DNA of 64,000 bases from Asterias rubens. Its lineage: Eukaryota. The position numbers and the translations under genes were made by a program. Shown one piece after another: positions 22,554 to 44,915 of this stretch. Location of the stretch: assembly GCF_902459465.1 (NCBI RefSeq), contig NC_047068.1, positions 10,416,001 to 10,480,000 of the forward strand, given 5' to 3'. The notes under the pieces are model-generated. The model saw nothing but the letters and a program-made list of their open reading frames with translations. It did not search any database and was not told where the DNA came from. Every line of letters begins with the position of its first letter. Position 1 is the first letter of the stretch.

Positions 22554-23291
22554 TCACAGTTCAAAGTAGACACAACCCTCAATATCCTTGGAGTCAGTGC
22601 GATCGTCCTCAAGAAAGGTGACGTCATTGAGTTGACATTTCTTCTCTTTCTCGCTGCTCTGCCAAATATTAAAGGAGCGGCAACGAGTATCTGATGTACA
22701 CGCCCAGCCACAAGCAATCACACCCTCTACGGCCAGGTTGTCGATGACGTGATTGAGGGGGCAGTATTGAGAGACACGCCCATCGGGACCTAGCAGGGTG
22801 TGGTAGATTGGCTGGATAGGGACCGGCATCTCACACGCAGCTAACTTGTGGTCTGTACTCTGGCAACTTACGCTGTCAGACCAAACCCCACCGCTGTATA
22901 CAGTCATTCGGGCACAGTTCAACCCGACGTCGTTGTGTGGATCGTTTGGAATCCACCAGTTAGTAAACTTTGCAGGCTGACCTCCACACAGCCAAACTCC
23001 TTCTTGAACAGCATCAGTGCAGCCGATCCACATACCAACGCTCTCTTTCACTGCCCACTCGTAGATGAAGTGGCTTTCTTCTCTTGAGCCAGGCACTATG
23101 AGGTTGCTCCCTAGTCGCTTGCATGCCGCCTCGGCTTGCATCCAGTTCATATTCTCAGTCAGTGAGATGTAGCAAGACTGACGCCATTTTACCCAGCCAG
23201 TTGGGCAAGAGGAGAGGACGGTAACAATGCTTTGCATTGTCATCAACATCAAGAGATGAAACAGAATTGTATTCATGCTTTGAAGAAACAT
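22554..23291 (-). CDS. CTL1: secreted C-type lectin + PAN/Apple protein, intact, uninterrupted ORF
   Basis: Signal peptide MNTILFHLLMLMTMQSIVTVLS; CTLD CPTGW..W..SCY...AEAAC...WIG...C...WSD...C...CE; PAN-type C-terminus CP(L)NH...CGWAC...CRSFN...CQLN. The start could be the ATG at 23291 or the one five codons downstream. Confidence 0.88.
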   Translation of the reverse strand: MFLQSMNTILFHLLMLMTMQSIVTVLSSCPTGWVKWRQSCYISLTENMNWMQAEAACKRLGSNLIVPGSREESHFIYEWAVKESVGMWIGCTDAVQEGVWLCGGQPAKFTNWWIPNDPHNDVGLNCARMTVYSGGVWSDSVSCQSTDHKLAACEMPVPIQPIYHTLLGPDGRVSQYCPLNHVIDNLAVEGVIACGWACTSDTRCRSFNIWQSSEKEKKCQLNDVTFLEDDRTDSKDIEGCVYFEL

Positions 23292-23779
23292 TATCAAATA
23301 AACTTTTGTTGACAAATTTTGTTGCGTTATGACACGTAGCTTTACAAGGCAAGTCGTTACACTAAACAATGCTGATCAGAACTCCCTCAGTTTTGCTTGC
23401 GTTCAGTGATATGATTTTACTTCAGCGTGTTCGTGTGAGGAATCAGCTCAAAATAGTCTTCACGAAGTCGTTGATGTAAAAGATCGATAAACGCAGAGCC
23501 GTTTTGGGAATTAAAATTGTGACCTTTTCATCGGACCTGTTTATTGAATCACGAATAGAAGTCTGCTTTGAAAGGTTCGTGTTTTAAATTTGGCCTTGCT
23601 TCTATGGACAAACGGTACTGCCTATACTATGCAGCTTGGTGTCTTTTATTCTGAACCTCAAAATGATCTTTAAAGATTATCGCTTTTAGGGCCTATAGTT
23701 TTTTTTAGGCAGGGGTTCTTCCCACGCAGAGAAATCGAGGTGAAAACAAGATGGCGACTGGTGGTATATTCCATTGGGA

Positions 23780-23981
23780 CGTTCTTTATCCTTTCTCGGG
23801 CTGTCGTCTTTCCAGTTGGTGAATCTAGCAGGCTGTCCTCCACACAGCCAAACTCTTTCTTGAGCATCATCTGTGCAGCCAATCCAAAGACCTTCAATCT
23901 CTTCAACTGCCACTTTACCCAGCCAGTTGGACAATATTGCATTGTCATCAATTTCAAGAGATGAAACAGATTAGTGTTCAT
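23780..23981 (-). pseudogene. CTL2: internally deleted, 3'-truncated CTL-PAN pseudogene
   Basis: MNTNLFHLLKLMTMQ joins directly to CPTGWVK, then jumps to GLWIGCTD...WKDDSPRKD and homology ends. There are two internal deletions and the PAN domain is lost. Confidence 0.8.
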
Positions 23982-24390
23982 GGTTTGAAAATACGTTGTT
24001 ATCACACGCCACTAATCTTTGTGTAATGAACATAAACTGACACATCGAGTCTTTCATCTTGGATATCATCAAATAATGCGAGTAACAATGAGTTAAATAC
24101 ACCACTACACGTAGGTTATTCTCCGTCGTCACCTTCATCGAGTTCGATCGCTTTTGAGCAGCGTCCAAATTTATTAATGTATTGATCTAAAGTGTTCATG
24201 GGACTTAAATTTCATAACAAAAATAGCCCAATCGTTGTGAAGCTAGCGCTAAACCAGTGACCGTATAAATGATCAGGTTGCCTTTAGATACTAATGGTAA
24301 TAATAATGGCTCATTATTATCTTTCTGTCTTTGTCAGTGATGGGACGTCATTGTGAAGAGAAAACACAAGTTGGCGATATTTATAAATGT

Positions 24391-25110
24391 TCAAACTTCA
24401 AAGTAGACACAACCCTCAATATCCTTGAAGTCGGTGTGATTATCTTCAAGAAAGGTGACGTCATTGAGTTGACATTTCTTCTCTTTCTTGCTGCTCTGCC
24501 AAACATTAAAGGAGCGGCATTGAGGATCTGTTGTACACGCCCGTCCACAAGCAATTACACCCTCTACGGCCAGGTTGTCGATGACGTGATTGAGGGGGCA
24601 GTATTGAGAGACACGCCCATTGGGACTTAGCAGGGTGTGGTAGATTGGCATGATAGAGTCTGGCATCTCACACGCAGCTGATTTATGGTCTGTACTCTGG
24701 CAACTTATTTTATCAGACCAAACTCCAGCTAATTGAACTGTCATTCGGGCACAGTTCAATTTCATATCGTCTCTTGGGCTGTCGTCTCTCCAGTTGATAA
24801 ACCTTGCAGGCTGACCACCACACAGCCAAACTCCTTCTTGAGCAGCATCTGTGCAGCCAATCCACAGTCCTTCATTTCCTTTCACTGCCCAGTCGAAGAT
24901 GAAGTCGTTTTCTTCTTTTGAATCAGGCACTATGAGGTTGCTCCCTAGTCGCTTGCATGTCGCCTCGGCTTGCATCCAGTTCATCATCTCAGGCAATAAG
25001 ATGTAGCAAGACTGACGCCATTTTACCCAGCCAGTTGGACAAGAGGAGAGGACGATAACAATGCTTTGCATTGTCATCAATATCAAGAGATGAAACAGAA
25101 TGGTATGCAT
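24391..25110 (-). CDS. CTL3: secreted C-type lectin + PAN/Apple protein, intact
   Basis: Open from MHTILFHLL to CVYFEV*; same architecture as CTL1; loop WRDDSPRDD. Confidence 0.88.
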   Translation of the reverse strand: MHTILFHLLILMTMQSIVIVLSSCPTGWVKWRQSCYILLPEMMNWMQAEATCKRLGSNLIVPDSKEENDFIFDWAVKGNEGLWIGCTDAAQEGVWLCGGQPARFINWRDDSPRDDMKLNCARMTVQLAGVWSDKISCQSTDHKSAACEMPDSIMPIYHTLLSPNGRVSQYCPLNHVIDNLAVEGVIACGRACTTDPQCRSFNVWQSSKKEKKCQLNDVTFLEDNHTDFKDIEGCVYFEV

Positions 25111-26271
25111 GCTTTGAAGAAACAATGTTATCACACGGAAAGCCACATTAACTCTGGATTTATGAAACATAAACTGACACATCGAGTCTTTCACCTTTGT
25201 TATATCAAACATGCAAGCAACAATGAGTTATATACACCACTACATGTAAATTTATACTCCGTCGTCACCTTCATCGAGTTCGATCGCTTCTGAGCAGCCT
25301 CTAAACTAATTAATGTATTGATCCAAAGTGTTAAAGGGACTTTAATTTGATAGGTTCCTGTGGAGTATAGACCTTGATTTCACTCCACTCCAACTCATTG
25401 TAACCAAACTGAGGCTGAACGAAATTATAGTCTAGTGCCAAGTTTGGATGTTAGTATTCATTACTGCTATGGAAACAGGGAAGATGACCAAGATGGTGGC
25501 AGTGTGATCAAGGACTCTAGCCCGTGCTGCCAAAGCGCATTAAAGGCATGGACACTATTGGTAATTACTCAAAATAATTATTAGCATGAAAACTTACTTG
25601 GTCACGAGTAATGGGGAGAGGTCGATGGTATAAAACATTGTGAGAAACGGCTCCCTCTGAAGTGCCACAGTTTTCGAGAAAGAGGTAATTTTCCACGAAT
25701 TTGATTTCGAGACCTCAGATTTAGAACTTGAGGCCTCGAAATCAACCATCTAAACGCACACAACTTCTTGTGACAATGGTGTTTTTTCTTTCATTAATAT
25801 CTCGCAAACTCGACGACCGATTGAGCTCAAATTTTCAGTGGTTTGTTATTTTATACATATGTTGAGATACACCAAGTAAGAAGACTGGTCTTTGACAATT
25901 ACCAATAGTGTCCACTGTCTTTAACGAAATTATAGTGCCAAGTTTGGATGTTAGTATTCATTACTGCTATGGAAACAGGGAAGATGACCAATATGGTGGC
26001 AGCGTGGTCAAGGTCTCTAGCCCGTGCTGCCAAAGCGCATTAAGCTAAAATCATTCACAAGAATCATCTCTGCCCTTACATATACCCATTTTACCCCTTT
26101 ACTTGGCGAAGAGAAGCAATCATAGTAAAGTGTCTTTCTCAAGAAGACAAGTGTCACGACCGGGACTCGAACCCACGACTAAGCCACCAGAACTTCAGTC
26201 CAATGCTCTACCAAAATTTCAAAAAAGTGTGTTTGAATAACATGAAAGAAGTTCATCAGGCGGTAAAATAT

Positions 26272-27015
26272 CAACTTATTAAATGTATTTTCTAAGAAAC
26301 ACAGCCAAATACTCACGTAATTTTGTTTACGTTTAGACTAGTTTCACTAGTCATCCTCAGAACGAGGCACCACCAGTCGGTTGGTGGCGCTGTTGCCTGC
26401 TTCGGCCACTGGATGGTGGTTTGGCCGAGTGTGTCCTCCCCGGGGACAAGATCGAAAAAGAACAGAAATGTGGCGTGGTATACGAAATTCCATGCCAGTC
26501 GTGCCAACTATCTTACATCGGGGAAACGGGGATAAAATTTGGTACTCGGTTCGAAGAACACAAAACAGAAGTCAACAAACTAACATCCGGCACCATGACG
26601 AGGGCAAGAAAAACATCCACAATAGGAAAAGAAACCACATCGGCCATAACAGAACATGCTAGGGACAACAATCACGTGATGAATTGGGCGGACAGCGCAA
26701 TTCTACATAAAGAGGGTGACAAATATAGACGATGAATCCGGGAAAGTCTCTAGATAAGGAGGCGACGATCTGTTCTGAACAGAGACGAGGGAGGGTATGA
26801 ACTATCACACATATGGGACCCCCTCATACCCCAAGTTCCACCAAGGGGGAGGACACACTCGGCCAAACCACCATCCAGTGGCCGAAGCAGGCAACAGCGC
26901 CACCAACCGACTGGTGGTGCCTCGTTCTGAGGATGACTAGTGAAACTAGTCTAAACGTAAACAAAATTACGTAAGTATTTGGCTGTGTTTCTTAGAAAAT
27001 ACATTTAATAAGTGT
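26272..27015 (+). mobile_element. Penelope-like element: GIY-YIG endonuclease remnant with an inverted pseudo-LTR
   Basis: GVVYEIPC..C...YIGETG...TRFEEH...SAITEHARDNNHVMNW. About 170 bp at 26272-26441 is an inverted copy of 26846-27013. Confidence 0.9.
26927..26973 (+). ncRNA. Hammerhead-ribozyme-like motif in the Penelope pseudo-LTR (core variant)
   Basis: CTGAGGA-T-GACTAGT gaa ACTAGTC-TAA-ACGTAA acaaaa TTACGT-A: stems II and III are perfect and the cleavage triplet is GUA, but GAAA reads TAAA. Confidence 0.6.
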
Positions 27016-27339
27016 TTAAATAACATTTGAAATAAATGCAAACTAAAAAACAACTCTGTGAATTTTAGTTAAAAAAGAGAAAACCATCTATGTGAAGATA
27101 GTAAATAAGACGGGAGTTGAACCTGTACTTTTTGAGGTGCAGTTCCAGTGTTCTCCACAAACTGCGCTGCCTGGATCCACATTACGGTATCTCCATGTAA
27201 TTACACGATGCAAACATTCTGGTTTTTCCTGTTCAAAACTAGAGGGCTGTAGTCTGGCACCTCATATGCATGGTAACAATCACTTTTCATTTTGACTCTT
27301 TAATCAGGAAACACGACTCCACCATTATAATACCACAGT

Positions 27340-27583
27340 GGGTGCGTTCGATTAGCTTCCCTGTGTCGTATCCCGCTCTGCACACTCTGGTGGGCCCCCG
27401 ACAAGAGCTAGTCGAACGATCACTCGCCCTCTTGTGGTGACGTCATGCACCTCAGGCAAGCCCTTAGCGACCCGTTCCATAAGCAGGGCACTTTGGGCTG
27501 ACCCTAGTGAGCCCCTGGAATGACGTCAAAGCTATTCGAACGTACCGGGAGCAGACCCCGGGGATGCTAATCGAACGCACCCT
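27340..27583. mobile_element. MITE with a GGTGCGTTCGATTAGC TIR; relic at 18750-18860
   Basis: GGGTGCGTTCGATTAGC...GCTAATCGAACGCACCC. Confidence 0.65.
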
Positions 27584-28108
27584 GTATCACCCTCTATACA
27601 GCGGAGGTCTCAAGATGGTGAGGGACATGAACGAAAAGTAGTGGTAAGACAACTACTCATAGTTCAACGTACACACAATCCTCAATGTCCTTGGAGTGGG
27701 TGTGAACAAGATGGCGACTGACGGTTTCTTTCTTGAAGACGTCCTCTGTCATGTATCTTGGAAATATCAGTCTAAATTTACTAAAAGACTGCTGGCTTCC
27801 TTGTTTTTTGATACATAGAGCCTATGTTTTTACTGCCACAGACAAAGATACCAAATGCTGATAGTCTTTATCTCGGTTCATGTCTGTCTATAGACCTTTT
27901 CGCAAATACTGGGGCGCGCGCGTAAAGCTTGGAATTAGGTGCATTGTGGTCTAGCTGGTATCCAAATTTGATCCATATCTATCCCACAATGCACCTCATT
28001 CAACAGTCTGCGCTTGCGCATTTGTATTTGCGAAAAGTTCTATGTCGGTGATGAGACGTCATTGAGAAGAGAAACCCAAGTTGGCGATATTTATAAAATA
28101 TTTAATGT

Positions 28109-28846
28109 TCAAAGTTCAAAATAGACACAACCCATAGTATCATTGGAGTCGGTGTAATCGTCCTCAAGAAAGGTGACGTCATTGAGTTGACATTTCTTCT
28201 CTTTCTTGCTGCTCTGCCAAACATTAAAGGAGCGGCAACGAGGATCTGATGTACCCGCCCAGCCACAAGCAATTACGCCCTCTACGGCCAGGTTGTCGAT
28301 GACGTGACTGAGGGGGCAGTATTGAGAGACACGCCCATCGGGACCTAGCAGGGTGTGGTAGACTGGCGTGGTCGGGGCTGGCATCTCACATACAGCTAGT
28401 TTGTGCTGCTGGCAAACTTTGTTGTCAGACCAAACTCCAAGAGAATAAATGGTTACTCGAGCACAGTTTAAGTCGGTGCTGTTTCTTGGGCTGTGTTTAC
28501 GCCAAGTGGTAAATTTTGCAAGCTGACCTTCACAGAGCCAAACTCCTTCTTGAGCAGCATCTGTGCAGCCGATCCACAGACCGCCATTACCTTCCACTGC
28601 CCACTCGAAGATGAAGTCGTTTTCTTCTTTCGAATCAGGCACTATGAGGTTGCTCCCTGGTCGCTTGCATGCCGCCTCGGCTTGCATCCAGTTCATCTTC
28701 CCAGGCAGTAAGATGTAGCAAGACTGACGCCATTTTACCCAGCCAGTTGGACAAGAGGAGAGGACGATAACAATGCTTTGCATTGTCATCAATGTGAAGA
28801 GATGAAACAGAATGGTATTCATTCTTTGAATAAACATTTTTACCAA
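28109..28846 (-). CDS. CTL4: secreted C-type lectin + PAN/Apple protein, ORF intact
   Basis: 245-aa ORF; loop WRKHSPRNS. One PAN cysteine is replaced (CGWAG versus CGWAC in the other copies). Confidence 0.85.
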   Translation of the reverse strand: MVKMFIQRMNTILFHLFTLMTMQSIVIVLSSCPTGWVKWRQSCYILLPGKMNWMQAEAACKRPGSNLIVPDSKEENDFIFEWAVEGNGGLWIGCTDAAQEGVWLCEGQLAKFTTWRKHSPRNSTDLNCARVTIYSLGVWSDNKVCQQHKLAVCEMPAPTTPVYHTLLGPDGRVSQYCPLSHVIDNLAVEGVIACGWAGTSDPRCRSFNVWQSSKKEKKCQLNDVTFLEDDYTDSNDTMGCVYFEL

Positions 28847-31800
28847 ACGCCACAGTAGCTCTGGTTGTATGAAACGTAAACTGACAAAAAAGTCCTCACT
28901 AATAATTCACGTGGGTTTAACATGCAAGCAACGAGTACAACACCAGGCTGTCTACCGTCGACACTTTTATCAAAGTCAATTGCTTCAATTAGTGTCTCAA
29001 TTTGTTGCTATTGTTTAAAAGTGAAGTGAGTCAAATATTGAACAAACAATATCCAAACGGTTGCGATGCCAACGAGCAAACAAAACCAGCGACCTAAAAT
29101 AATCAGACCAATGAGGCGCAAAGATTGTCAGAAATGATGATATGAATAGTTTGGTCACTTTTTACCGAAATTTCAATTATTTATTTATTTTTCCCAGCAA
29201 GTGCACAAGAGAAGGGGACGATTGTTCATCTATGTGTGTTTGATTTATACATCTGCTCTAGATGAATGGCAGCAGTTGTGGGGGGGTTGAATCCCACCCA
29301 AGTAATGTGTCTGTTGTTTATAGAATGGGAAAAACACTGGGTAAACATTGCTTAACACACATCGGTGTATTGGGAAATGTTCTTTATCCCCATGCAAATT
29401 TAACATGTAATATATCTCTGCTAATGACTCCATCTCTCCTTGATGGACAAACATGAGTTTTTCTTTCGGTATTTCACAAATGAGCTTAAGTTGAACAAAG
29501 GCTTTGAGAAATAAGTTTAAATTCTTGACTGAGATATTTTGAGATGATGTGTTGTAAATCGATTGGGTTGTTTAGAATGGTGTTGAGTAAGAGAGGGAAC
29601 AGGGCACAGTTCAAAATATTTAGACTGCGTAAGGGCGAACGTGATGCACAACAAGTAAGACGAACTAATTTTCACTCTTTGTTATTATTATGATTATTTA
29701 TTCCGCCATTGAATTAAGAAAACTATATACAGGCCGTTAAAGGAACACGTTGCATTGGACCGGTCGAGTTGGTCTTTAAAAAGTGTTGTTTGTTATAAAA
29801 TGCATGTTACTAGAAAGATATTTTAAAAGTTGAATATAATGATCGACACAAGTACCACTCGAAATTGCGTGGTTGTTACCTCGTCGACAAACACGGTCGG
29901 CCATTTTTGGGAGTCAAAGTGTTGATTAGTTCGCAAAGTTAAAGGAAAACCACGCAATTTCGTGGCAAATGTGTGTGGATCATTGTATTCTACTTTTAAA
30001 ACATCTTTCCAACCGTATGCATTTTATAACAAACGCTTTTCAAAGACCAACTCGACCGATCCAAGGCAACGTGTTCCTTTAAAGCCATTGGACACTTTCG
30101 GAACAGAAAACAAAATAAAAGTTCACAGATTTAAAAAATAACTTGCAGGGTTTACAGAAGGTAATGGTGAAAGACTTCTCTTAAAATATTATTCAATGAA
30201 ACGCTTTACTTTTTGAGAAAACATTAACCCTATAGTCCCTGCACCGCCCGAGTTTGCCGACATAATTTTGTTTTTCTTTTCAAGATTCTTGCAGTAACTT
30301 TACTGAAATCGTAGTTCAAATTTTTTAAAGATAGCCAAGGCTTATTATTTATAATTAAATGCACAATTTTTGACCCTTTCGGTAATATTTGTACAAGTCC
30401 TCATTGGGGAACAATACAAAAAAAACCTACGGTAATATTTATGGCGATTATTCTTGTATAATGATAACATGGATACAATAGCTTTTCAAGGCTTTCATCT
30501 GGCTCAATGCTGATTGTTTGCGAAGGCATAAGTTTTCGACAATATCACCATGAATGATAAATACAGTTTCCTTTGTGTTTACTAATAAGCGTTTTGTTGG
30601 GTAAGTGCTAAATTATTTCATCATCATTAGCTTCGTCAAGTCAACTGTGAAGAGACAAATTAATAATGATCTATAAATAACTAGATGGATTCACCAATGC
30701 GTAGGCATACTATTAACTACCTGGTTTTATTTTGATGTTTATTATTTTCTACAAACAAAAGCTACAGCGAGGTTTCCTCCTACCGCATAATACAGTGTAT
30801 CGCTTTAGGTGGCTGGGCGGTCCAGCGGCTAAATGGTTAAGACAATTATCAATTATGCAACTTATGAAATTCGACCTTAAGCCACTCAAGTGTCCATAAA
30901 TCCACCAAACAACATCGTAGCGCAACACAAGATGTGTCAAAACGTGCAGAAATTAACGGTGAATAGAAACGAACAATTAAATGTTTGTATACTATTTCAG
31001 GTTCCGATAAATCTGACCATTTGTAAGTGTTTAGATACTTTATTGGCGCAGTTTAGTTGTGATACACGAAGTGTGGGCCTTTGGGCAATACTGTTTACCG
31101 AAAGTGTTCATTGGCTTTAATTTAAGCCAAAACTGTAATTGTGATGCAATGAAATTAACGAATGATAACGGCCTCATTTGGTCTAAAATACGGTCAATTT
31201 CATAAAGCCTGTAAGCAGACAATTTCTGCTTACGGAGAAACTCTCAGCAGAGTTTCTGTTTCATAAACAGTGTTTACCGTATAAGCAAAGTAATAAACAC
31301 ACGCTAGCTTGTCAGTTTGTACGCAGATTAGTGACGTACCAATGTAAATCTTCTGTGGACGCATTGCACAAGCTTTTCTGTAATTATAGTAAGCTCAGAA
31401 AATTTGTTTACTGGTTAACAGCTTTATAAAATTAGAACCAAGGTGAAAATAATAATTATATATTTGAAATTCATTAAAATTTTAAGGATAAGGTTATCTT
31501 TTCATGAAATTCCATGCAGAATTATTAAAATACATAAATTTTGGAATTTATTTACAAAAGCAAACACAAGTTTCATAATCGCGCAAAACTGTTCAAGTCT
31601 CGCAAGTATTCGAATATTTGTGACCAGACAAAGAGCGCGAGTTTGTTTCCTCAAGTTTTTAAACCAATGTACGTTAAAAAAAACTTTCCATTACTCACGA
31701 GAATTGACTTTTACACCACTGACTTTTTCAATAAACAAAGTGAGTCTATGAAATATAGTACATAAAAGACCTTCATATACAAAGTCTCTCAAAATATACA

Positions 31801-31979
31801 CTTCAAAAACCGGGTGTTAAATTAACACCATTGGTGTAGTCAAATATTTTATAACCAACAAAAGAATCAAATTGTACACCATAGGATGTTAAAATAACAC
31901 TAATTTCTTTATCAATATAAACTACTAGGGAAACTGACTGGGTAAATTTTGAAATGATTTTTGGGGTTGAACAAAGAAT

Positions 31980-32052
31980 TGACTAGAGTGGGATTCGAAC
32001 CAACGACCTCCGGATTAACGTGCCGGCGCTCTACCAACTGAGCTATCTAGCC
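31980..32052 (-). tRNA. tRNA-Asn(GTT)-like sequence, probably a SINE head or pseudogene
   Basis: 73-nt cloverleaf: acceptor GGCTAGA/TCTAGTC, D stem GCTC/GAGC, T loop TTCGAAT, anticodon loop ACGTTAA. It lacks the conserved U33 and has mismatches in the anticodon and T stems. Confidence 0.45.
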
Positions 32053-32444
32053 CTATATTGGCGGTGTCCCTATTTTGTCAATATCTTTGTTCGGGGGTGC
32101 CAGTCAGAAGCCATACAACCGTTAACTGCCGTGTGGTCAATGATCACACCCACATTACGATACAACCTGGGAAGCGGCAGCCAGGGGATCACCTTAAAAG
32201 GATGCGACTTTTTGTTTCACTAATTTCTTTAAAAACATTAATTACACTAGTGTTATTATGAAGTTAATGTTGATATGTTCTGTATCTATATAATTATAAC
32301 AATAATCATGGTATCTTTAAGGCATAATATTCTTCCATAAATCAAAATTCTGACATCACGATGAATACTGTTTTAGATTGTCCCCGTTGTTATACTGCAT
32401 GGTTTGTCTGTCGGTGAATGGGACCACAGTGCATGACGAAATGC

Positions 32445-33182
32445 TCAAAGTTCAAAGTAGACACAACCCTTAATATCCTTGGAGTCGGTGTGATCATCTT
32501 CAAGAAAGTTGACGTCATTGAGTTGACATTTCTTCTCTTTCTCGCTGCTCTGCCAAACATTAAAGGAGCGGCAACGAGGATCTGATGTACACGCCCAGCC
32601 ACAAGCAAACATACCCTCTACGGCCAGGTTGCCGATGACGTGATTGAGGGGGCAGTATTGAGAGACACGCCCATCCTGACCTAGCAGGGTGTGGTAGATT
32701 GGCACGATAGGGACCGGCATCTCACATGCAACTAATTTACGGGCGCCATTCTTGCAATGATCGCTATCAGACCAACGCCCACCGTCGTATACAGTCACTC
32801 GGGCACAGTTCAACCGTATGTCGTTGTGTGGATTGTTTGGATACCGCCAGTTGGTGAATCTTGCAGGCTGACCTCCACACAGCCAAACTCCTTCTTCAGC
32901 AACATCGGTGCAGCCGATCCACATACCGTCATTCCCTTTCACTGCCCACTCGTATATGAAGTGGTTTTCTTCTTTCGAATCAGGCCATATGAGGTTGCTC
33001 CCTGGTCGCTTGCATGCCTCCTCGGCTTGCATCCAGTTCATCTTCTCAGGCAGTAAGATGTAGCAAGACTGACGCCATTTCACCCAGCCAGTTGGACAAG
33101 AGGAGAGGACGATAACAATGCTTTGCATTGTCATCAATATCAAGAAATGAAGCAAAATGGTATTTATGCTTTGAAGAAACAT
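32445..33182 (-). CDS. CTL5: secreted C-type lectin + PAN/Apple protein, intact
   Basis: 245-aa ORF; loop WRYPNNPHND. Confidence 0.88.
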   Translation of the reverse strand: MFLQSINTILLHFLILMTMQSIVIVLSSCPTGWVKWRQSCYILLPEKMNWMQAEEACKRPGSNLIWPDSKEENHFIYEWAVKGNDGMWIGCTDVAEEGVWLCGGQPARFTNWRYPNNPHNDIRLNCARVTVYDGGRWSDSDHCKNGARKLVACEMPVPIVPIYHTLLGQDGRVSQYCPLNHVIGNLAVEGMFACGWACTSDPRCRSFNVWQSSEKEKKCQLNDVNFLEDDHTDSKDIKGCVYFEL

Positions 33183-33629
33183 TTTTATATAACGTCACAG
33201 TAACTCTAGTTTGATGTAATGTAAACTGACACAACTAGCCGTGCGAGCAAAAGTGAATACACCACGAGAATACAGCAGAGGTAGTTTTATTCTCCGTCGT
33301 CACCTTCACCATGGTAACCCAACGTTTGACGCTTCGATATTAGCGTCCAAATGAATGGTTTTTATTGTTAAAAAATTGTTCAAGTGACTCAAATTTAATT
33401 TAAAAACAGTCGAACGTTTACGAAACAAAGGTAAACGCAAAACCAGTGACCGGATATAATCAGACTGATGGGTTAAACGAATAATAATTTTCAGTAAAAT
33501 TTCATAACCTTGATGCGAAATGTCAAACGTTGCATGATGGGAGAACCACGTAATCAAATTGCGTTGCTGAGCGCAAAAGGAAAAAAAAACCTAGCGTTTA
33601 CTATGAATACATTTTTGTAGACATTGAAC

Positions 33630-34400
33630 ACAAAGTGGCGTATTGCCTGAACGTAAGCCAACAATGCGAAATATCAAAAATACGTTGGTGTACGCTGGTA
33701 TAAGTTTGGGGTAAGTTGGGGATACGTCGTTTACGGTAAGAGCACGCTGTGATACGCTGTTAAAAATTTTAACACGTCGAGCCCGCGTTTTTTTTTTAGC
33801 ATGTTCAAAATTTCTCGGCGTACTGAACGTGTACTTCATACGTTCTGCATAAGTTCCCTATAAGTTCATGGTACGTTAGACATACGTTGACATACGCTGG
33901 CATACGTTAGAGGAACGTTACTCGTAGGTTGATATACGTTGATGTACGTCGGCCCCTGGTTGCTTGCTTCTTCTTGGGAGGCATGATGACTGCCTGATGA
34001 CATCGGCGGGAATGATGTGCTTGAGATATACCGGTATTTATACGTTCTACAGCGACATAGGTCACGTGTTCGTTGTACGCCGAGGATACGCTGAGGATAC
34101 GTTGAGGAAACATTTAGGATACGTTGAACTCGGCAGACATATGCTATGAATGCGTTAGACATGTTACTCATATGCTTGCATACGCTGCCAACTTCGTGAT
34201 ATTAGTTAGTGAAACGCTATCAATGCGTTAGTCATAGCGCTATGTATACGTTCAATACGCTATGGATACGTCATTTCCAACACCGATGTCGACTTTTTCG
34301 ATGCAATTCCTTGGGAAGTTGGACGTTCTTGGACTTTGAACTATTTTGTGCATCCGTTGGCATACGTTCAGGCGATACGCCATGGTGTGCCAGGGCCTTA
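33630..34400. mobile_element. ACGT/TACG-rich inverted-repeat element between the divergent lectin arms
   Basis: 27-bp IR TGGCGTATTGCCTGAACGTAAGCCAAC at 33636 versus 34356-34382 (2 mismatches); the right end is GGGCC-TTA. Confidence 0.55.
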
Positions 34401-34951
34401 AAGTAGGTACACTAAGTTACTTTGTCCAACGTTCTACAAGATGGGAAGACCATGGCCCAATGTCATGGCTCTGCTTACCGTAAGCAAATAATCAGCGCTT
34501 ACGGAAGCAGGGAACTTACGCCAAGCGTATTTCACGGGTTCATATCGGAGAATTGTTATTTGTGTGCGAGTGTATTCGTCGCTTAATACACAGCAAGCGC
34601 ACAAGTTCGGCGAGATGACGTAAGCGGAAAATGGTGATCGTCTGCGCAGAATTCGGCGGTAAGCAGATCCATGATACCTAATATTACATTCCGTGAAACA
34701 ATGTAATTGTACTTCAAAATTACCAAATTTCTTGTGACTTTTTAATCCCTAAAAGACGCTTATACCATGGAGCTATAGCTCCATGCTAATATAGAAGGAT
34801 CGAATTCGGGGAAGGTGTGACGACGGAGAATATACTACCTGTTGTTAGCCTAATGGTTATTTCTCGCTTGTTTAATTCATGTACCTTATCAGTAGACTCA
34901 ACGTGACAGTGATATTTTACATAAAACAAGAGTAAGTGGCGTGTGATAGTA

Positions 34952-35681
34952 ATGTTTTTTAAAAGAATGAATAACATTCTGTTTGATCTCTTGATATTGA
35001 TGACAATTCAAAGCATTGTTATCGGCCTGTCCTCTTGTCCAACTGGCTGGGTAAAATGGCGTCAGTCTTGCTACATCTTAGTTCCTGAGAAGATGAACTG
35101 GATGCAAGCCGAGGCGGCATGCAAGCGACTAGGGAGCAACCTCGTAGTGCCTGACTAAAGAGAAGAAAACCACTTCATCTACGAGTGGACAGTGGAAGGG
35201 AATGAAGGTATGTGTATCGGCTGCACAGATGCTGCTCAAGAAGGAGTTTGGCTGTGTGGAGGTCAGCCTGCAAGATTCATCATCTGGAAAGACGACAGCC
35301 CAAGAAACGACATGAACTTGAACTGTGCTCGAATGACGGTTCATTTATCTGGAGTTTGGTCTGACAATGTAAGTTGCCAAAGTGCAGACAACAAGTACTC
35401 TGCGTGTGAGCTGGCGGACCCTATTGTGCCAATCTACCACACCCTGCTAGGTCCCGATGGGCGTGTCTCTCAATACTGCCCCCAATCACATCATCGACAA
35501 CCTGGCCGTAGAGGGCGTGATTGCTTCTGGCTGGGCGTGTACATCGGATCCTCGATGCCGCTCCTTGAATGTTTGGCAGAGCAGCGAGAGAGAAGAAATG
35601 TCAACTCAATGACGTCACCTTTCTTCAGGATGTTCACACCGACTCCAAGGATATTGACGGCTATGTCTACTTTGAACTTTG
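34952..35681 (+). pseudogene. CTL6: CTL-PAN pseudogene
   Basis: Premature TAA at 35156-35158 where most paralogues have TCA (PDS). A 2-nt deletion near 35483 (TGCCCCC-AAT versus TGCCCCCTCAAT) shifts the frame of the PAN domain. Confidence 0.85.
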
Positions 35682-36361
35682 AACATATATAAAATATCGC
35701 CAGCTTTTGTTTTCTCTTCTCAATGACGTCTCATGACTGACAAAGACATGAACCGAGAGAAAGACTATCGACGGTTTTGTATCTTTGTCTGTGGCAATAT
35801 ATATTATGTATATAATAATTACAACATTCAGACTCTTAACAGTGAATCTAGGCTAAATGAAACCCCCATCCTGGTGTGCGGATGTTGGCAAGAGAAAGGA
35901 TGTCCAAGGGAGTATACCACCAGGTGCCATTTTGTTTGCACCTCGATCTATCTGCGTGGGAGGTACTCCTGCCTGATGAAAGAACTACACGCGGTCGCCT
36001 TTGAAGTTCACTTTGAATTTCAGAACAATGGACATCGAGTTGCATAGTATACCGAGCAGTTTGTATTCCATAGACTTAGCAAAGCAAAATTTAAAACACG
36101 AACCTTTCAAAGCAGACTTCTCTTAGTTACTCAATAAATAGTGTCGATGAAAAGGACACAAGTTTAATTGCCAAAACGGCTCTGCGTTTTAATCGATCTT
36201 TGAGCTGATTCCTCACACGAACACTCTGAAGTAAAATCATATCACTAAACGCAAGCAAAACTGAGTGAGTTCTGATCAGAAGTTTTAGTGTAACGACTTG
36301 CCTTGTAAGCTAAATGACTGTCATAACGCAACAAAATTAGTCAACATAAGTCGATTTGATA

Positions 36362-37094
36362 ATGTTTCTTCAAAGCGTGAATACCATTCTGTTTCATCTC
36401 TTGATATTGATGACAATGCAAAGCATTGTTATCGTCCTCTCCTCTTGTCCAACTGGCTGGGTAAAATGGCGTCAGTCTTGCTACATCTTACTGCCTGAGA
36501 AGATGAACTGGATGCAAGCCGAGGCGGCATGCAAGCGACCAGGGAGCAACCTCATAGTGCCTGAGTCAAAAGAAGAAAACGACTTCATCTTCGAATGGGC
36601 AGTGAAAGGGAATGACGGTATGTGGATCGGCTGCACAGATGCTGCTCAAGAAGGAGTTTGGCTGTGTGGAGGTCAGCCTGCAAAGTTTACCAACTGGTAT
36701 TCAAGCAGTCCTCACAACGACGCAAGTTATCTATGCCCGAATGACTGTTTTCAATGAAGGATTTTGGTCTGATCAAATAATATACCAGATTACAGATCAT
36801 AAATTAGTTGCATGTGAGATGCCGGTCCCTATCGTGCCAATCTACCACACCCTGCTAGGTTCCGATGGGCGTGTCTCTCAATACTGCCCCCTCAATCACG
36901 TCATCGACAACTTGGCCGTAGAGGGCGTGATTGCTTGCGGCTGGGCGTGTACATCAGATCCTCGTTGCCGCTCCTTCAATATTTGCCAGAGCAGCAAAAA
37001 AGAGAAGAAATGTCAACTCAATGACGTCACCTTTCTTGAGGACGATCACACCGAATCCAAGAATATCGAGGGTTGTGTCTACTTTGAACTTTGA
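36362..37094 (+). pseudogene. CTL7: frameshifted CTL-PAN copy
   Basis: Net 2-nt deletion relative to CTL1 near 36725-36735 splits the gene into ORFs 36356-36757 and 36612-37094. Two CTLD cysteines read Tyr. Confidence 0.8.
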
Positions 37095-38784
37095 ACATTT
37101 ATAAAATACGCCAACTTTTGTTTTCTCTTTTCATTGACGTCTCATCACTGACAAAGACATGAACCGAGAGAACGGCTATCGACGGTTTGGTATCTTTGTC
37201 TGTGGCAGTAAAACACATTATGTATATAAACAAAGAAACAAAGAAACCATCACTCTCTCAGTAAATTTAGGCTGATATTTCCAAGAGACATGACAGAGGA
37301 CGTCTTCAAGAAAGAAACAATCAGTCGCCAACTTGTTCGCATCCACTCCAAGGATATTGAGGGTTGTGTCTGCTTTAAACCATGAGTAGTTTGATACCAC
37401 TACTTTTCGTTGATGTCTCTCACCATCTTGATTCAAAGTTTACTACACCAGGAAAGACCTCCGCTGTAGAGAGTGATACTGTGCTATAACAAGGGTGATA
37501 GTCGTGTTTCCTGATACAAGAGTGGACATGAATAGTGAATGCTGTTATACATGTTAGGGGCCAGACTACAACCTGATAGCCTGGTTTAGTAACATATTGT
37601 GATCGGGGAAAGAAACATGTTTTCACCATGTAATTACACTGAGATACCACAAGGCAGATCCATGCATGTTAGATTTGACAATTGATTGAACTAATCAGAT
37701 GCATGCGCACGGTTCATTTGTTTAAAAATAACTCATAATTTAATTGCACGTTTTTACAATAATATATTCAAATGGTTTGATAACGCATTCACATGGTTTG
37801 GTAGTCTATAGTAGTGAATTACCAAAAGCGTCACCCTTTCTACATATTGAAGCATTTAATTCACCTCAGTATTGATTGCCTGCATGCAATGCCATCATTG
37901 ACTTGGTTAGTCTGTTTGTATAGGATAGTAAAACATAATACTATGTGGACAGATTCAAGCGGCAATCTAAATTATGCGTGCAATAGATTATAATTTTGTT
38001 GAATGAAGAACTTCCTCACAAACAACATCTTCAAATAAATTATAAATTCGTTTGAAAGAAGTAATAAACCATGCTATCAGGTTATTTATTCGTTTGAATC
38101 GATTACTTAATCTTTCAAACGATGATGTGTTATTAATTGTTCGAACGTAACACCAAAGCACGATAACGATTATTCATAAATACCTATTGGTGGAGAGCGC
38201 GTCACGTGGTTGTGTATAAACCTTTGTTTATGTCCAGTAAAAAGTGTTGAAACATGGGCGTGAACACGCGAGCTTGCACCTGTTCTTATAAGACAGTTTC
38301 TTCATATCTATTGGTCAAGAGCAACGGCTGAAACAGTTGTGCCATATCACGCGATACGCGCGTTTCGCGCACAGCATTCCCTTATAAGGAGTTGTTTACC
38401 CGAGGGCGGCGAAGGGCTTTACCATTTCATAGCTGGAGGGGTGTTGTGTTGAATGAAATCATTGAACAATTATAATTTTTGCATTTATTTTACTTTTTGA
38501 CCAAAAAGTGTTGATGTTTTTTTGACCGAAAGGGTATTTATGAATGGCTATCAAAGTGTGTTGAATCAGTTTTCAACTATAGTGGTTTAAATCCGCCGAG
38601 GCCTGATTCTTTATAATCTACCTCGACCTCGTCTCGGTAAAATTATCAAGAACCAGGCCTCGTAGGGATTAAACTAGTTGAAAACCTCTTCACCACACAT
38701 TGACTCCCTTAATAAACCAAGCGAACAAGCTGTTACTTTGTTTTGAGTATAAACGATTACTATTCTGTGCGAATTGGTTATCAT

Positions 38785-39190: not shown

Positions 39191-40435
39191 AGGGCCTACC
39201 ACTTCGTATGAGTGCCACAGATTATACTTAACCTTGCAAACTTCCTATATATTTCTTTAAACAGGTTTGATACTGGATCATGTAAACAGGTTATTAAATC
39301 AGGCTAAATATACGATCAATTATGACTAAACCTAAATCGAGCACACGAATTACTGAAAGAATATCACGCGAAATTGTCTTCACTTTGCAACCATGCTTTC
39401 TATAATAGAAGTCGCCAAGACCGCATTGACTCTATATACAACCAGCATGAAACGTGCTCGCAGTTACTTGTTCTGGTCTTTTCACATTTTGTAGAATGTT
39501 TGACAAAGAAATCACTAAATAATGTATATTCGGTGTGCAGTATCACTTTGTTACAACACATACTTTACTGTGTAGATTTTGTTATTTAAAGGGACACGTT
39601 GCCTCGGTTGGGCGTGTTGGTCTATACAAAGCGTTTGAAAACCATTTGTTATAAAATGCGCCATTTTTGTGGAGTCAAATTTTTGACTCCACAAAAAGGC
39701 CAACCGTGTAAGTTTCCAAAATAAAAGGAAAACCACGTTAAAACTGTTAAAACATCTTTCCAACCATATGCATTTCATAACAAACGGTTCAAACACTTTT
39801 CATAGACCAACTCGTCCGATCCAAGGCAACGTTTCCCAAGATCCTTTTCAGAAATAGGTTGATCATACCAATTTCTAATCTGCGGCAAGAGTTGAATAAA
39901 AAATCATTTCAATATAAACAAAATCTACACAAAAACACATGGTGTTTCACACCTTTCTATATGTCTCAAAAATTATATACAGAGTGAACACCGCAAATTC
40001 TTCTCTTGTGCTCCCAACGCCATGTTATTACGTGGATCTACCATATCCATGCAACTGCTTGCGCATTAAGCATCAAGGTTATAAAATTATACTGATTACT
40101 ATTGAACCAAGATGACGTAAAAGTTGAATAAATTATTCTCTCTGTTATTTCTTGGAGGCACTTCTCATCAGTTTGATTTTAATCCGGTCACTGGTTTTGC
40201 GTTTCCCGTTGACTTAGCAACCGTTTGGCTGCTGTTGATTAAATTTGAGAGACTTGACCAAGTTATAACAAAACCCAGTAATTTAGACGTTTACTGCAGA
40301 AGCGTCGAACTTGGTGAAGGTGACGACGGAAAATTAAACTACCTGTATCCTCGCTTTGTACTCGCTGTTGCTTGCACGTCTAGTTGGGTCATTTTATACT
40401 ACTTCAAATTAGAGTTACTGTGACATGTGATAACA

Positions 40436-41173
40436 ATGTTTCTTCAAAGCATGAATACCATTCTGTTTCATCTCTTGATATTGATGACAATCCAAAGCAT
40501 TGTTATCGTCTTCTCCTCCTGTCCAACTGGCTGGGTGAAATGGCGTCAGTCTTGCTACATCTTACTGCCTGAGAAGATGAACTGGATGCAAGCCGAGGCG
40601 GCATGCAAGCGTCCAGGGAGCAACCTCATAGTGCCTGATTCAAAAGAAGAAAACGACTTCATCTTCGAGTGGGCAGTGAAATGGAATGACGGTATGTGGA
40701 TCGGCTGCACAGATGCTGCCCAAGAAGAAGTTTGGCTGTGTGGAGGTCAGCCTGCAAGATTCACCAACTGGCGGTATCCAAACAATCCACACCACGACAT
40801 ACGGTTGAACTGTGCCCGAATGACTGTTTACGACGGTGGGCTTTGGTCTGATATCGAACATTGCAAGAATGGCGCCCGTAAATTAGCTGCATGTGAGATG
40901 CCGGTCCCTATCGTGCCAATCTACCACACCCTGCTAGGTCCCGATGGGCGTGTCTCTCAATACTGCCCCCTCAATCACGTCATCGACAACCTGGCCGTAG
41001 AGGGTATGATTGCTTGTGGCTGGGCGTGTACATCAGATCCTCGTTGCCGCTCCTTTAATGTTTGGCAGAGCAGCGAGAAAGAGAAGAAATGTCAACTCAA
41101 TGACGTCACCTTTCTTGAGGAAGATCACACCGACTCCAATGATATTAAGGGTTGTGTCTACTTTGAACTGTGA
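40436..41173 (+). CDS. CTL8: secreted C-type lectin + PAN/Apple protein, intact
   Basis: Open from MFLQSMNT to CVYFEL*; loop WRYPNNPHHD. Confidence 0.88.
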   Translation: MFLQSMNTILFHLLILMTIQSIVIVFSSCPTGWVKWRQSCYILLPEKMNWMQAEAACKRPGSNLIVPDSKEENDFIFEWAVKWNDGMWIGCTDAAQEEVWLCGGQPARFTNWRYPNNPHHDIRLNCARMTVYDGGLWSDIEHCKNGARKLAACEMPVPIVPIYHTLLGPDGRVSQYCPLNHVIDNLAVEGMIACGWACTSDPRCRSFNVWQSSEKEKKCQLNDVTFLEEDHTDSNDIKGCVYFEL

Positions 41174-44100
41174 GCATTGCGTCATGCAACGTGTTCCCTT
41201 TCCCATTATTAGTCACACTGACAAACAAACCTTGCAGTAAACAACAAGGAAAATCTAGTAGAGTATTTATCGTGATGTCAGAATTTGCGTTTTGGAAGGA
41301 TATATGCCTCATAGATATTGAGGAACTTAGTACAATTTATGTAGATTTGTTCACTTTTCTTTGTTTATTGAACAATTCCATGTACTATATCATGCATGTC
41401 CCGTGCGTAGTGAAAGTTTTGTTGACCACTTGGTCCCACGTACATTGCTTGAAGGAATAACCAATGTTCGAAAACGCGCGAGATTTGCTTAGTTATTGAG
41501 ATAATCGTAATTATGGCCTGCTTTTGTAAATAATATATTTAAACATTATGTACCTGAATAATTCTGCACTATTTATGGAAATTCATGAAAAGATAACCCT
41601 ACTTTTTAAATTTGATTGAATTTCGATTACATAATTATCACTTTAAAGACACCGGACACTTTTGGTAATTGTCAAGGACCAGTCTTCTCACTTTAGTGTA
41701 TCTCAACAAATGCACAAAATAACAAACCTCTGAAAATTTGGGCTCAATTGGTCGTCGAAGTTGCGAGATAATAATGGAAGAAAAAACATCCTTGCCACAC
41801 GAAGTTGTGTGCTTTCAGATGAATGATTTTTGGACCTCAAAATCTAGTTCTGAGGCCTCGAAATCAAATTCAAATATTTTAGTGGAAAATTACTTCTTTC
41901 TCGAAAACTACGTTACTTCAGAGGGAGCCGTTTCTCACACTGTTTTATACTATCAACAGCTCTCCATTGCTCGTTACCTCGTAAGTTTTTATGGTAACAA
42001 TTATTTTGAGTAATTACCAATAGTGTCTTCTGCCTTGAACCCTTCTATTTATAAAGCAATATTTTGTGAGCTTGGCAGAAAAACTTGTGTATCGCATCCA
42101 CAGTGGATTCACATTGTTACGTCACTCTTCTGCTTGCAAGCTGGCAAGCTATATAGCATGTTTTATATGCTTTACGGTAACCATTGATTATGGAACAGAA
42201 ACTTTGCTGAGAGCTGCTCCGTAAGCAGAAATTGGCTGCATACAGGCCTTTATGAAACTTACCGTAGTTTCGACCAAATGAGGGCGTTTTTATTCGTTAA
42301 TTTTATTGCATCACAATTACAGTTTTGTCATAATTTAACTGCATGTATAAAGTTTTCTTAAATCAGTGATTGAATAAAATATATTATAGAACTGAACAAA
42401 AATGGAAAATTAGTTTGTCTTACTTGTTTTGCATCACGTTGGTTCTCATTCGCCCTTACACAGTCTAAATATTTTGAATTGTGCCCTGTTCCCTCTCTTA
42501 CTCGACACCATTCTAAACAACTCCATCGATTGACATCACATCATCTCAAAATGACTCAATCGAGCATTTCAACTTTTTTATCAGAGCCTTTGTTTCGACT
42601 TGGGCTCATTTATGAAATACCGAAAGAATAAATAAAGATAATTATAAATCGGTTGGCTGGCATGCTTGCCGTCTTGGACTGCATGCTCTTTGCATTATAA
42701 AAAGATTTGACAACTTTCTTCCAGTGACAGTAATAATCAAATAAATTCTCCAAAATGTACAATAAACGCAAATTTCCACTCTAATACATATTAATACAAA
42801 GTATATATTATAACTTACAGGAATACTGGCGAATCCTGGCTTTTCCAGAAGTTCTGCTAATACTGCTGATGCAGGCTTACATCTACCATTCGCTGCATAC
42901 AAATGATTTTTTTGAGCAACACTCCAACTACAACTTGTCGAACTCTCATTAGTTCTAACTGCCAAAGGCTAGCTATATGCCCTCTCTCCTAAGGCCAACA
43001 AATCATTGAGGCTGGCTATACCCTCTCCTCAGGAAACTCAGATGCTGAATGACAAATGGTACACAACACGTCCTCCAAAACCAGAACAAGAATCTTAGGA
43101 ATTTCTAATTGTGTTCCCATTAACGTTTCTACCTGCCCGCTCATGCCTAGTCATGAATATTCACTATAATTATGCGAATAACCAGTGAATTACATTTACG
43201 CTTCTATGCATATTAAGATGGCTCACCGAGTTCGAGGAAGGGCGCGGTTCGGCCACTTGAGATGAAAAACTTGTTCTCTCTCTAGACAAAAAACTTACTG
43301 TATACCACTATGGCCATTCACACTTTATATTACGTAACTCATCTGTAACAATGATGCTGGAGTAAATTCGCTACAATTAATTTCACTCTGTGACATAAAC
43401 ATACGCCGTGTTGGGCTGTATTTTTATGTCCGCAGTCGGTTTAGTTTTCTATTCTGTCTAACCGAAGGTCCGGAATCTTGTCGTGACCTTTAAACTTCAT
43501 CCCCTTGGGGAACCATGTGACCCGTAGTGCATCATCTGGTCACATGTCACTGAGCGGAATGGCGTCGAGGGTTAACCAATGAGGCCTCTTTTCTGCCATT
43601 CATGGAGAGATGGAATCATTAGAAATATGATAGATATTAAATTGCATCAGGGATAAAGAATATTTCCCCACATATCGATGTGTGTCAACCCTGTATAGGG
43701 CTTACTCGGTACTTTCCCGAGTCCTACAAACGCACAGGCAAAATACGCGGGCGGGGATCCAAACCCCCAACAAGTGTCACTTAAGAGCAGATGTTTTAAT
43801 CAACCACTAAATGAACAATCGTCCTCATCTCTTATTCACCTTGCTGGGAAAAACAAATAGATAATTGCAATCTCGGTAAAAAGTGACAAAATTATTCATA
43901 TCATCATTTCTGACAATCTTTGCGCGTCATTGGTCTGATTATTCACGTCACTTGTTTTGTTTGTTCGTTGGCATCGCAACCATTCGGCTATTGTTTGTTC
44001 AATTGACTCAATTCACTTTTGAACAATAACAACAAATCGGACACTAATTGAAGCAATTGACTTTGATAAAAGTGTCGACGGAGAATAAAACTACTGCAGT

Positions 44101-44198
44101 AGCCTCTTGTGGTACTCGTTGCTCACATGGTTAATCCACGTACCTTTACATGACATAAAACGAGAGTTACTGTGGCGCGTGATTTGTTTCTTAAAAGC

Positions 44199-44915
44199 AT
44201 GAATACCATTCTGTTTCATCTCTTGATATTGATGACAATACAAAGCATTGTTATCGTCCTCTCCTCTTGTCCAAATGGTTGGGTAAAATGGCGTCAGTCT
44301 TGCTACATCTTACTGCCTGGGAAGATGAACTGGATGCAAGCCGTGGCGGCATGCAAGCGACTAGGGAGCAACCTCATAGTGCCTGATTCAAAAGAAGAAA
44401 ACGACTTCATCTTCGAGTGGGCAGTGAAAGGGAATGACGGTATGTGGATCGGCTGCACCGATGCTGCTCAAGAAGGAGTTTGGCTGTGTAAAGGCCAGCC
44501 TGCAAGATTCACCAACTGGCGGTATCCAAACAATCCACACAACGACATACGGTTGAACTGTGCCCGAGTGACTGTATACGACGGTGGGCGTTGGTCTGAT
44601 AGCGAACATTGCAAGAATGGCGCCCGTAAATTAGTTGCATGTGAGATGCCGGTCCCTATCGTGCCAATCTACCACACCCTGCTAGGTCCCAATGGGCGTG
44701 TATCTCAATACTGCCCCCTCAATCACGTCATCGACAACCTGGCCGTAGAGGGTGTGATTGCTTGTGGCTGGGCGTGTACATCAGATCCTCAATGCCGCTC
44801 CTTTAATGTTTGGCAGAGCAGCAAGAAAGAGAAGAAATGTCAACTCAACAACGTCACCTTTCTTGAGGACGATTACACCGACTTCATTGAGGGCTGTGTC
44901 TACTTTGAACTGTGA
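44199..44915 (+). CDS. CTL9: secreted C-type lectin + PAN/Apple protein, intact
   Basis: ATG at 44199 (MNTILF); loop WRYPNNPHND; small deletion near the C-terminus (TDFIEG). Confidence 0.87.
   Translation: MNTILFHLLILMTIQSIVIVLSSCPNGWVKWRQSCYILLPGKMNWMQAVAACKRLGSNLIVPDSKEENDFIFEWAVKGNDGMWIGCTDAAQEGVWLCKGQPARFTNWRYPNNPHNDIRLNCARVTVYDGGRWSDSEHCKNGARKLVACEMPVPIVPIYHTLLGPNGRVSQYCPLNHVIDNLAVEGVIACGWACTSDPQCRSFNVWQSSKKEKKCQLNNVTFLEDDYTDFIEGCVYFEL

Follow-up and report, generated by a model that had tools for sequence, protein, structure and literature searches.

Similar scaffolds and divergent loops in a tandem array of C-type lectin-like genes of the starfish Asterias rubens

Introduction

How do tandem gene copies that are nearly alike over most of their length come to differ strongly in one short stretch, and is selection for diversity needed to account for it? 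The question is raised by a tandem array of genes, CTL1 to CTL9, in the starfish Asterias rubens, each encoding a C-type lectin-like domain (CTLD) followed by a PAN/Apple domain. The array lies in a 64,000-nucleotide stretch of genomic DNA (contig NC_047068.1, positions 10,416,001 to 10,480,000; hereafter the window). A preliminary description, made from the sequence letters and their open reading frames, had presented the array as a birth-and-death repertoire of secreted lectins built on a fixed scaffold with one single hypervariable recognition surface, and as a candidate for an undescribed system. The analysis reported here leads to a more modest picture, that of an ordinary fast-evolving gene family with modest signs of selection for diversity.

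Results

Scaffold and loop of the array

All copies follow one architecture, namely a hydrophobic leader, then the CTLD, then the PAN/Apple domain, encoded by a single exon of ~245 codons that forms one uninterrupted frame in each intact copy. A tblastn search of the 64 kb window with CTL5 returned exactly nine copies, all within positions 22554–44915 and none elsewhere, which bears out the nine-copy count given previously, but only six of them (CTL1, CTL3, CTL4, CTL5, CTL8, and CTL9) are intact, the other three (CTL2, CTL6, and CTL7) being broken and CTL2 a mere remnant. CTL1–5 occupy the minus strand and CTL6–9 the plus strand (five and four copies, respectively), and the two blocks meet head to head. 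One loop type, with 94%–99% nucleotide identity, is carried by CTL5, CTL8, and CTL9, giving about five loop types in the array, and every loop peptide quoted in the preliminary description was found as written.

Averaged over pairs of copies, the 5' and 3' coding parts are each 0.92 identical at the nucleotide level, against 0.71 for the loop, a contrast between scaffold and loop that is real and far beyond chance. The 200-bp flanks, where alignable, are 0.72–0.75 identical, compared with 0.68 for a shuffled control. Among codons that specify the same amino acid, synonymous differences per site amount to 0.05–0.07 in the leader, 0.15 in the CTLD core, 0.32–0.35 in the loop, and 0.09–0.14 in the PAN part, a pattern with which the NG86 synonymous estimates agree. 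Since purifying selection on the protein cannot lower synonymous divergence, whereas gene conversion can, the low divergence of the scaffold points to gene conversion. The fixed scaffold proposed earlier therefore holds in the sense that the copies are alike, but not in the sense that constraint simply keeps them so, given that synonymous sites are homogenised as well.

Separate topologies for three segments of the genes outperformed a single topology by 104.5 log-likelihood (lnL) units at an equal number of free parameters (132), and conflicts among the segment trees are supported, with Aam5.6_4834 pairing with three different partners in the three segments. The flanks of the genes fall into types that assort independently at the two ends: 5' type A is found at CTL1 and CTL7 and type B at the remaining copies, and 3' type X is found at CTL1, 5, 8, and 9 and type Y at CTL3, 4, 6, and 7. 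Two neighbouring genes of Asterias amurensis cluster together in the 5' part (92% support), and the loop of CTL5 is closer to that of CTL9 (99%) than to the loop of its own orthologue, the CTL5 and CTL9 scaffolds being 93% identical. Judged from these relationships, some conversions are younger than the split between the two species. The loop types are old and common to both species, and between CTL4 and its near-copy P0013 all ~11 amino-acid differences lie outside the loop and 0 within it.

The type-B 5' flanks also share an upstream element, GTGACGACGGAG followed by a TATA-like A/T box, located 112–143 nt upstream of the first codon in CTL3, CTL5, CTL6, and CTL9. CTL8 has a variant of the element and CTL4 part of it; CTL1 and CTL7, whose flanks are of type A, lack it. 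A core promoter that includes a CRE-like half site is one possible interpretation.

The variable loop and the calcium/sugar site

The variable stretch of ~40 residues (alignment columns 113–157) spans the latter half of the long loop, strands beta3 and beta4, and the loop that follows them. Its position on the canonical ligand face of the CTLD, as had been proposed, was confirmed by HMMER alignment to CTLD2 of uPARAP, in which N117-P-H119 falls on the EPN motif, L124 on the Glu that precedes the beta3 Cys, and S138 on the WND Asn. Of the five ligand positions of calcium site 2, four are replaced and the Asp alone is kept; other copies carry D-P-H or S-P-R at the EPN position, and WND has become W-S-D. 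Because more distant two-domain relatives retain EPN or EPS together with EDC or QDC, the loss of the site is derived in this subfamily. With the EPN, Glu, and WND positions replaced by N-P-H, Leu, and W-S-D, binding is probably not of the classical calcium-dependent kind; the residues at these positions make classical sugar binding unlikely and suggest that these proteins are not classical C-type lectins. With the canonical calcium/sugar site not kept, lectin is a putative designation. Across the range from Asterias to Patiria, the structural positions of the loop (Pro, Cys, Ala-Arg, Gly, Trp, and Asp) do not vary.

Domains, predicted fold, and secretion

The Pfam profile Lectin_C matched all six intact copies at 40.6–49.3 bits (cut-off 22.6; E 5e-10 to 9e-13) and 41 of 41 family members. 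PAN_1 scored 17.1–20.0 bits in the copies of the window, below its cut-off of 21.4, and two copies had no match; among family members it was found at E<=0.01 in 37 of 41 (best 5e-8), and nine members also matched PAN_4. The two-domain CTLD and PAN architecture put forward in the preliminary description is supported by these matches, with Lectin_C present in all intact copies and PAN_1 in most of the family.

An AlphaFold2 model of CTL5 built on an 86-row alignment reached pLDDT 91 and pTM 0.78, where 24 close sequences had given pLDDT 39. Residues 28–157 of the model match solved CTLDs with Foldseek TM scores of 0.8–0.87 by target and VIA Z of 18–19, and on this model the CTLD fold is assigned confidently. 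The cysteines of the long-form CTLD (C29, C40, C57, C126, C143, and C153) are invariant or nearly so across the 41 sequences, although C126 and C143 are missing from CTL7; the W88-I-G motif is present across the same sequences, and there is an extra cysteine pair, C91/C102. Six cysteines of the PAN part (C177, C194, C198, C204, C219, and C240) are conserved, the number anticipated of a PAN/Apple domain, and the model shows the C-terminal ~70 residues as strands at 176–188, 206–222, and 234–244 with a helix at 191–200. Structure searches with the model returned no PAN match, CTLD matches dominating the results, and it is the sequence profile that points to a PAN/Apple domain here.

At the N-terminus, a short n-region is followed by ~18 hydrophobic residues and by small residues before C29, and in the Patiria relatives the leader is a classic one with Ala-Ser at its end; a weak, sub-threshold match to UL45 covers the same N-terminal stretch. 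The proteins are probably secreted.

Selection on the loop

Site models were fitted with our own Goldman-Yang implementation on a separate tree for each segment, with branch lengths fixed at M0 proportions and site posteriors obtained by naive empirical Bayes; its M0 reproduces the IQ-TREE GY+F3X4 lnL exactly (-5325.70 in both). For the loop, M0 gave an omega (dN/dS) of 0.89, or 1.08 without Patiria. M2a fitted the loop better than M1a (likelihood-ratio test statistic, LRT, 10.8, p 0.005), placing 32% of codons at omega 2.05, and M8 better than M8a (LRT 9.3, p 0.001), with 60% of codons at omega 1.72. The corresponding values without Patiria were LRT 13.4, p 0.001, and 36% of codons at omega 2.29 for M2a, and LRT 13.1, p 0.00015, and 59% of codons at omega 1.91 for M8. 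The 5' coding part showed no class with omega above 1 (M2a versus M1a, LRT 1.75, p 0.42), and in the linker/PAN part M2a was favoured over M1a (LRT 8.2, p 0.016), with 21% of codons at omega 2.0. The NG86 omega of the loop was not relied on alone, as the region was picked for its variability and is near saturation. Across four orthologous pairs, the loop has accumulated 18.7 nonsynonymous and 2.3 synonymous changes, compared with 86.5 and 38.5 elsewhere (Fisher p 0.03). With moderate confidence, these results indicate moderate diversifying selection on the non-structural residues of the loop, superimposed on generally weak constraint.

Relatives, synteny, and turnover

The best protein matches come from Asterias amurensis (up to 87%), then from A. 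rubens, Patiria miniata, and Acanthaster planci, and all carry automatically assigned names; those of relatives include snaclec-like, perlucin-like, and ice-structuring-like. A search of the literature, with tube-foot adhesion and coelomocytes among its topics, gave no paper on the family. The family is nonetheless not undescribed, being already auto-annotated in Asterias, Patiria, and Acanthaster; with the same architecture common in molluscs as well, the claim of an undescribed system is not sustained.

The window aligns in reverse to A. amurensis CP134962.1 at 5.616–5.637 Mb, with 91%–95% DNA identity running through intergenic DNA, and the head-to-head layout is found there too. CTL1, CTL3, CTL5, and CTL9 have clear positional orthologues, and the counterpart of CTL4 is a C-terminal fragment only. 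CTL7 and CTL8 both map to a single A. amurensis gene. The window has one extra copy relative to the syntenic array. CTL6 is damaged in both species, and this damage may predate the species split; its A. amurensis counterpart (L001 6297–7010) is unannotated and has an open frame in which roughly residues 105–124 of the CTLD are out of frame. These gains and losses, along with the pseudogenes inside the array, support the birth-and-death evolution that had been suggested. Tandem arrays occur at three places on one A. amurensis chromosome (4.24, 5.62, and 8.5 Mb). Within A. rubens, the CTL3 sequence recurs in a 1767-nt genomic contig, a contig from another sample of the species shows 99.83% identity over 1767 nt, and P0003 represents an intact version of CTL7 in a public contig.

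Retroposition was considered as the origin of the intronless copies and is not favoured: homology extends 150–200 bp on both sides within flank types, and copy order is conserved with A. amurensis, though target-site duplications were not systematically searched. A separate small locus lies on A. rubens LR699098.1 at 12.50–12.52 Mb (L002 7585–10714), beside NUDIX and CSN1 genes, and holds the intact copy P0007, a copy stopped after 111 codons, and a PAN fragment.

Expression

Four RNA-seq runs labelled A. rubens (~6.8 billion letters) were mapped on positions 31450–37400 at 97% likeness. Depth was zero on CTL5 and CTL6 in all four, and CTL7 was covered at ~1x in run X18 only; contigs from the runs contained at most 0.07 of the sampled words of CTL5 and 0.18 of those of CTL7. 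The runs do contain the organism, since a repeat at 31848–32245 is covered 150–220x in all four. Most reads at this repeat, which lies downstream of CTL5, fit partly, and many strand-switch and backward joints occur among them; it has the look of a dispersed repeat or transposon fragment that is strongly transcribed. A patch at 34435–34633, between CTL5 and CTL6, has a depth of 5–13x with loose read ends at 34454 and 34487 and a match of ~35 nt, and is probably a motif in common with a transcript from elsewhere. Short public contigs (ENA/NCBI) that were considered as transcripts proved genomic: L006 runs collinear with the window through intergenic DNA and a portion of CTL2, and P0008 and P0019 derive from a fragmented whole-genome shotgun assembly.

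Features of the array and its surroundings

Coordinates of the copies and of three orthologues are given in Table 1. The conserved start of CTL3 is probably the Met at the 'MHT' position, its open frame extending upstream to 25212, and that of CTL9 is probably the 'MNT' Met.

Table 1. Copies of the array (window coordinates) and orthologues in A. amurensis.
Feature	Position	Strand	Description
CTL1	22554..23291	-	intact 245-codon CTLD+PAN; loop 22836-22955; 5' flank type A, 3' flank type X
CTL2	23670..24005	-	~110-codon remnant with leader and part of CTLD, frames broken
CTL3	24391..25125	-	intact; loop 24673-24789
CTL4	28109..28837	-	open frame intact; loop 28391-28501; a conserved PAN cysteine replaced by Gly
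CTL5	32445..33182	-	intact; loop 32727-32846; head to head with CTL6; copy used for the structure model
CTL6	34952..35692	+	pseudogene; two 2-bp deletions in the PAN part, near 35483 and 35586
CTL7	36362..37094	+	frameshift inside the loop at about 36733; both cysteines of one CTLD disulfide replaced by Tyr
CTL8	40436..41173	+	intact; loop 40772-40891; loop type as in CTL5 and CTL9
CTL9	44184..44915	+	intact; loop 44520-44639; 2-codon deletion near the C-terminus
Divergent intergenic region	33183..34951	.	separates the minus block CTL1-5 from the plus block CTL6-9
CTL1 orthologue	A. amurensis L001 18182-18919		
CTL3 orthologue	A. amurensis L001 16572-17306		
CTL9 orthologue	A. amurensis L001 1168-1905		

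Between CTL3 and CTL4, a 104-aa open frame at 26421–26735 (+) is GIY-YIG-like by eye and may be a transposon remnant. Elsewhere in the window, open frames at 16031–16540 (+) and 19193–19681 (-) resemble, by eye, the C-terminal part of retrotransposon reverse-transcriptase open reading frames, a long collagen-like open frame with Gly-X-Y repeats lies at 6493–7347 (+), and a run of 140 N at 49459–49598 marks an assembly gap or masked stretch.

Discussion

We consider it probable, though well short of certain, that the array is a tandem CTLD and PAN family under birth-and-death evolution in which conversion homogenises the scaffold and the loop escapes homogenisation while holding codons with omega above 1. 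In this reading, conversion between paralogues keeps the leader, CTLD core, and PAN domain 91%–98% alike, synonymous sites included, and a segment of ~40 residues largely escapes, persisting as a few old loop types across species. Non-structural codons within that segment evolve at an omega of about 1.7–2.3, and loop segments are occasionally copied between genes, as between CTL5 and CTL9. The loop face could then be the surface that determines specificity and the PAN domain a constant module for binding a partner; an immune or gamete role is a guess.

Several observations weigh against this reading. Omega over the loop as a whole is about 0.9–1.1 (NG86 0.7–0.8), and the DNA of the loop has diverged no further than the non-coding flanks. 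The site-wise dN/dS analysis that the preliminary description had called for thus recovered a codon class with omega above 1 within a loop whose overall omega is close to 1, and the values come near to the outcome that the same description had named as telling against it, namely dN/dS at or below 1 with divergence no higher than in the flanks. About half of all codons fall in the neutral class. The signal is not specific to the loop either, as M8 was favoured over M8a in the linker/PAN part (LRT 10.0, p 0.0008, 22% of codons at omega 2.0), and signs of selection are not confined to a single surface. Among the orthologues, the nonsynonymous excess over the neutral expectation is not significant (binomial p 0.15), and some of these changes may have come in through conversion, for instance in the CTL5 loop, which is nearer to that of CTL9; more generally, recombination left within partitions inflates site-model tests, and clustered changes can be brought in by conversion. 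Relaxed constraint also fits the three broken copies among the nine and the loss of conserved cysteines from CTL4 and CTL7. Secretion is read from the appearance of the N-terminus, and the transcripts proposed as a check were not recovered from CTL5 or CTL6 in the four runs, with little more from CTL7.

Much of this would be expected if the loop were only the least constrained surface of an old, partly decaying family, at which conversion stalls once the loop has diverged, the island of divergence being a mechanical by-product and no selected repertoire. Such a neutral account draws on the equal identity of loop and flanks, the loop-wide omega of ~1, the omega=1 class that takes in about half of the codons in every partition, the broken copies and missing cysteines, and the lack of RNA reads on CTL5 and CTL6. 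It is nevertheless the more doubtful account, for M8 and M2a fit the loop better than M8a and M1a with an omega (1.7–2.3) significantly above 1, the loop has kept its structural residues unchanged between Asterias and Patiria, and orthologous pairs keep their frames open across species; loop types are also conserved between species, and P0013 and CTL4 differ by ~11 changes in the scaffold and 0 in the loop.

The replaced calcium/sugar ligands raise a different issue, whether these proteins are recognition receptors at all. The CTLD could instead be a calcium-independent scaffold for binding proteins or surfaces, in an adhesive or mucus, as in biomineral- or ice-binding proteins, or in a snaclec-like secretion, with differences among paralogues reflecting tuning to substrates or targets. 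Calcium-independent CTLDs are indeed among the structural neighbours of the model (type II antifreeze protein 2zib, SPL-2 6a7s, ovocleidin-17 1gz2, and tetranectin), and relatives bear the snaclec-like, perlucin-like, and ice-structuring-like names mentioned above. Those names were assigned automatically, however, and any CTLD would give such fold matches; no observation made here links the genes to a tissue or a secretion, and the literature on tube-foot adhesion and coelomocytes yielded no paper on the family. We regard this possibility as unlikely. Far less credible still is a dedicated generator of diversity, in which loop cassettes, those of pseudogenes included, would be moved between expressed genes at a high rate in the germline or soma, in the manner of chicken immunoglobulin pseudogene conversion. 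The 99% identical loops of CTL5 and CTL9 inside 93% identical scaffolds, the independent assortment of flank types and loop types, and the pseudogenes inside the array would suit it, but the loop types are old and sit at the same positions in A. amurensis, which makes exchange rare on an evolutionary timescale, and the contig from another sample is nearly identical over 1767 nt. The RNA reads, with nil coverage, showed neither joints nor variants. A germline arrangement, in which conversion maintains the scaffold and PAN adaptor and moves long-lived loop cassettes among genes of two 5' and two 3' flank kinds, with selection shielding the loop islands, would amount to a calcium-independent, possibly protein-binding, starfish-specific combinatorial repertoire; we put it forward as a speculative idea with a small chance of being right.

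The closest known proteins are the auto-annotated CTLD proteins of starfish (A. amurensis 'C-type lectin domain family 4 member M-like', A. rubens 'perlucin-like', and those of Patiria miniata and Acanthaster planci), which belong to the same family at 51%–87% full-length identity and share both the leader-CTLD-PAN layout and the single coding exon; they are known by name only, no functional study having been found in the literature. Mollusc proteins with Lectin_C and PAN_1 (230–246 aa; ESM Atlas clusters of 326, 69, and 73 members) have the same size and domain order, with feature scores of 0.94, and the best match among AlphaFold DB clusters, the two-domain A0A7M7P6J2 (248 aa), aligns with a Foldseek E of 1.8e-14 over residues 27–244. 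Identity to these proteins is, however, at most ~28%, and the relative orientation of the domains differs (root-mean-square deviation 11 A); the shared layout may reflect either common descent or independent joining of the domains. Classical calcium-dependent carbohydrate recognition domains, such as those of mincle, DC-SIGN, ASGPR, CEL-I, and the GalNAc lectin of Patiria pectinifera (Q8WPD0), resemble the array in fold, WIG motif, disulfides, and a variable segment at the sugar site, whereas the array has N-P-H, D-P-H, or S-P-R in place of EPN/QPD, Leu in place of Glu, W-S-D in place of WND, and an appended PAN domain.

Loop-focused change with conversion-homogenised frameworks is a familiar pattern in CTLD multigene families. 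Snake-venom snaclecs and the Ly49/KLR clusters of natural killer cell receptors are fast-evolving CTLD families, and human RHD/RHCE offer divergence islands amid gene conversion; the array resembles these systems in its tandem CTLD genes, loop-focused change, birth-and-death evolution, and converted frameworks, but belongs to another lineage, has another domain partner, and is known here from its genes. The sea-urchin SpTransformer (Sp185/333) genes, with their element-mosaic diversity, extreme variation between individuals, and proven immune induction, are likewise an echinoderm tandem cluster of small, probably secreted, mosaic, and highly variable genes, yet they encode an unrelated protein that has neither CTLD nor PAN, and the array is known from sequence alone.

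Echinoderms depend on large innate recognition gene families, and starfish have been far less explored in this respect than sea urchins. The array described here provides a clear natural example of divergence islands inside genes homogenised by conversion, and of a CTLD in which the classical calcium/sugar site has been lost and the loop continues to change. Should the genes turn out to be expressed and to bind different targets, they would constitute a tractable recognition repertoire in starfish.

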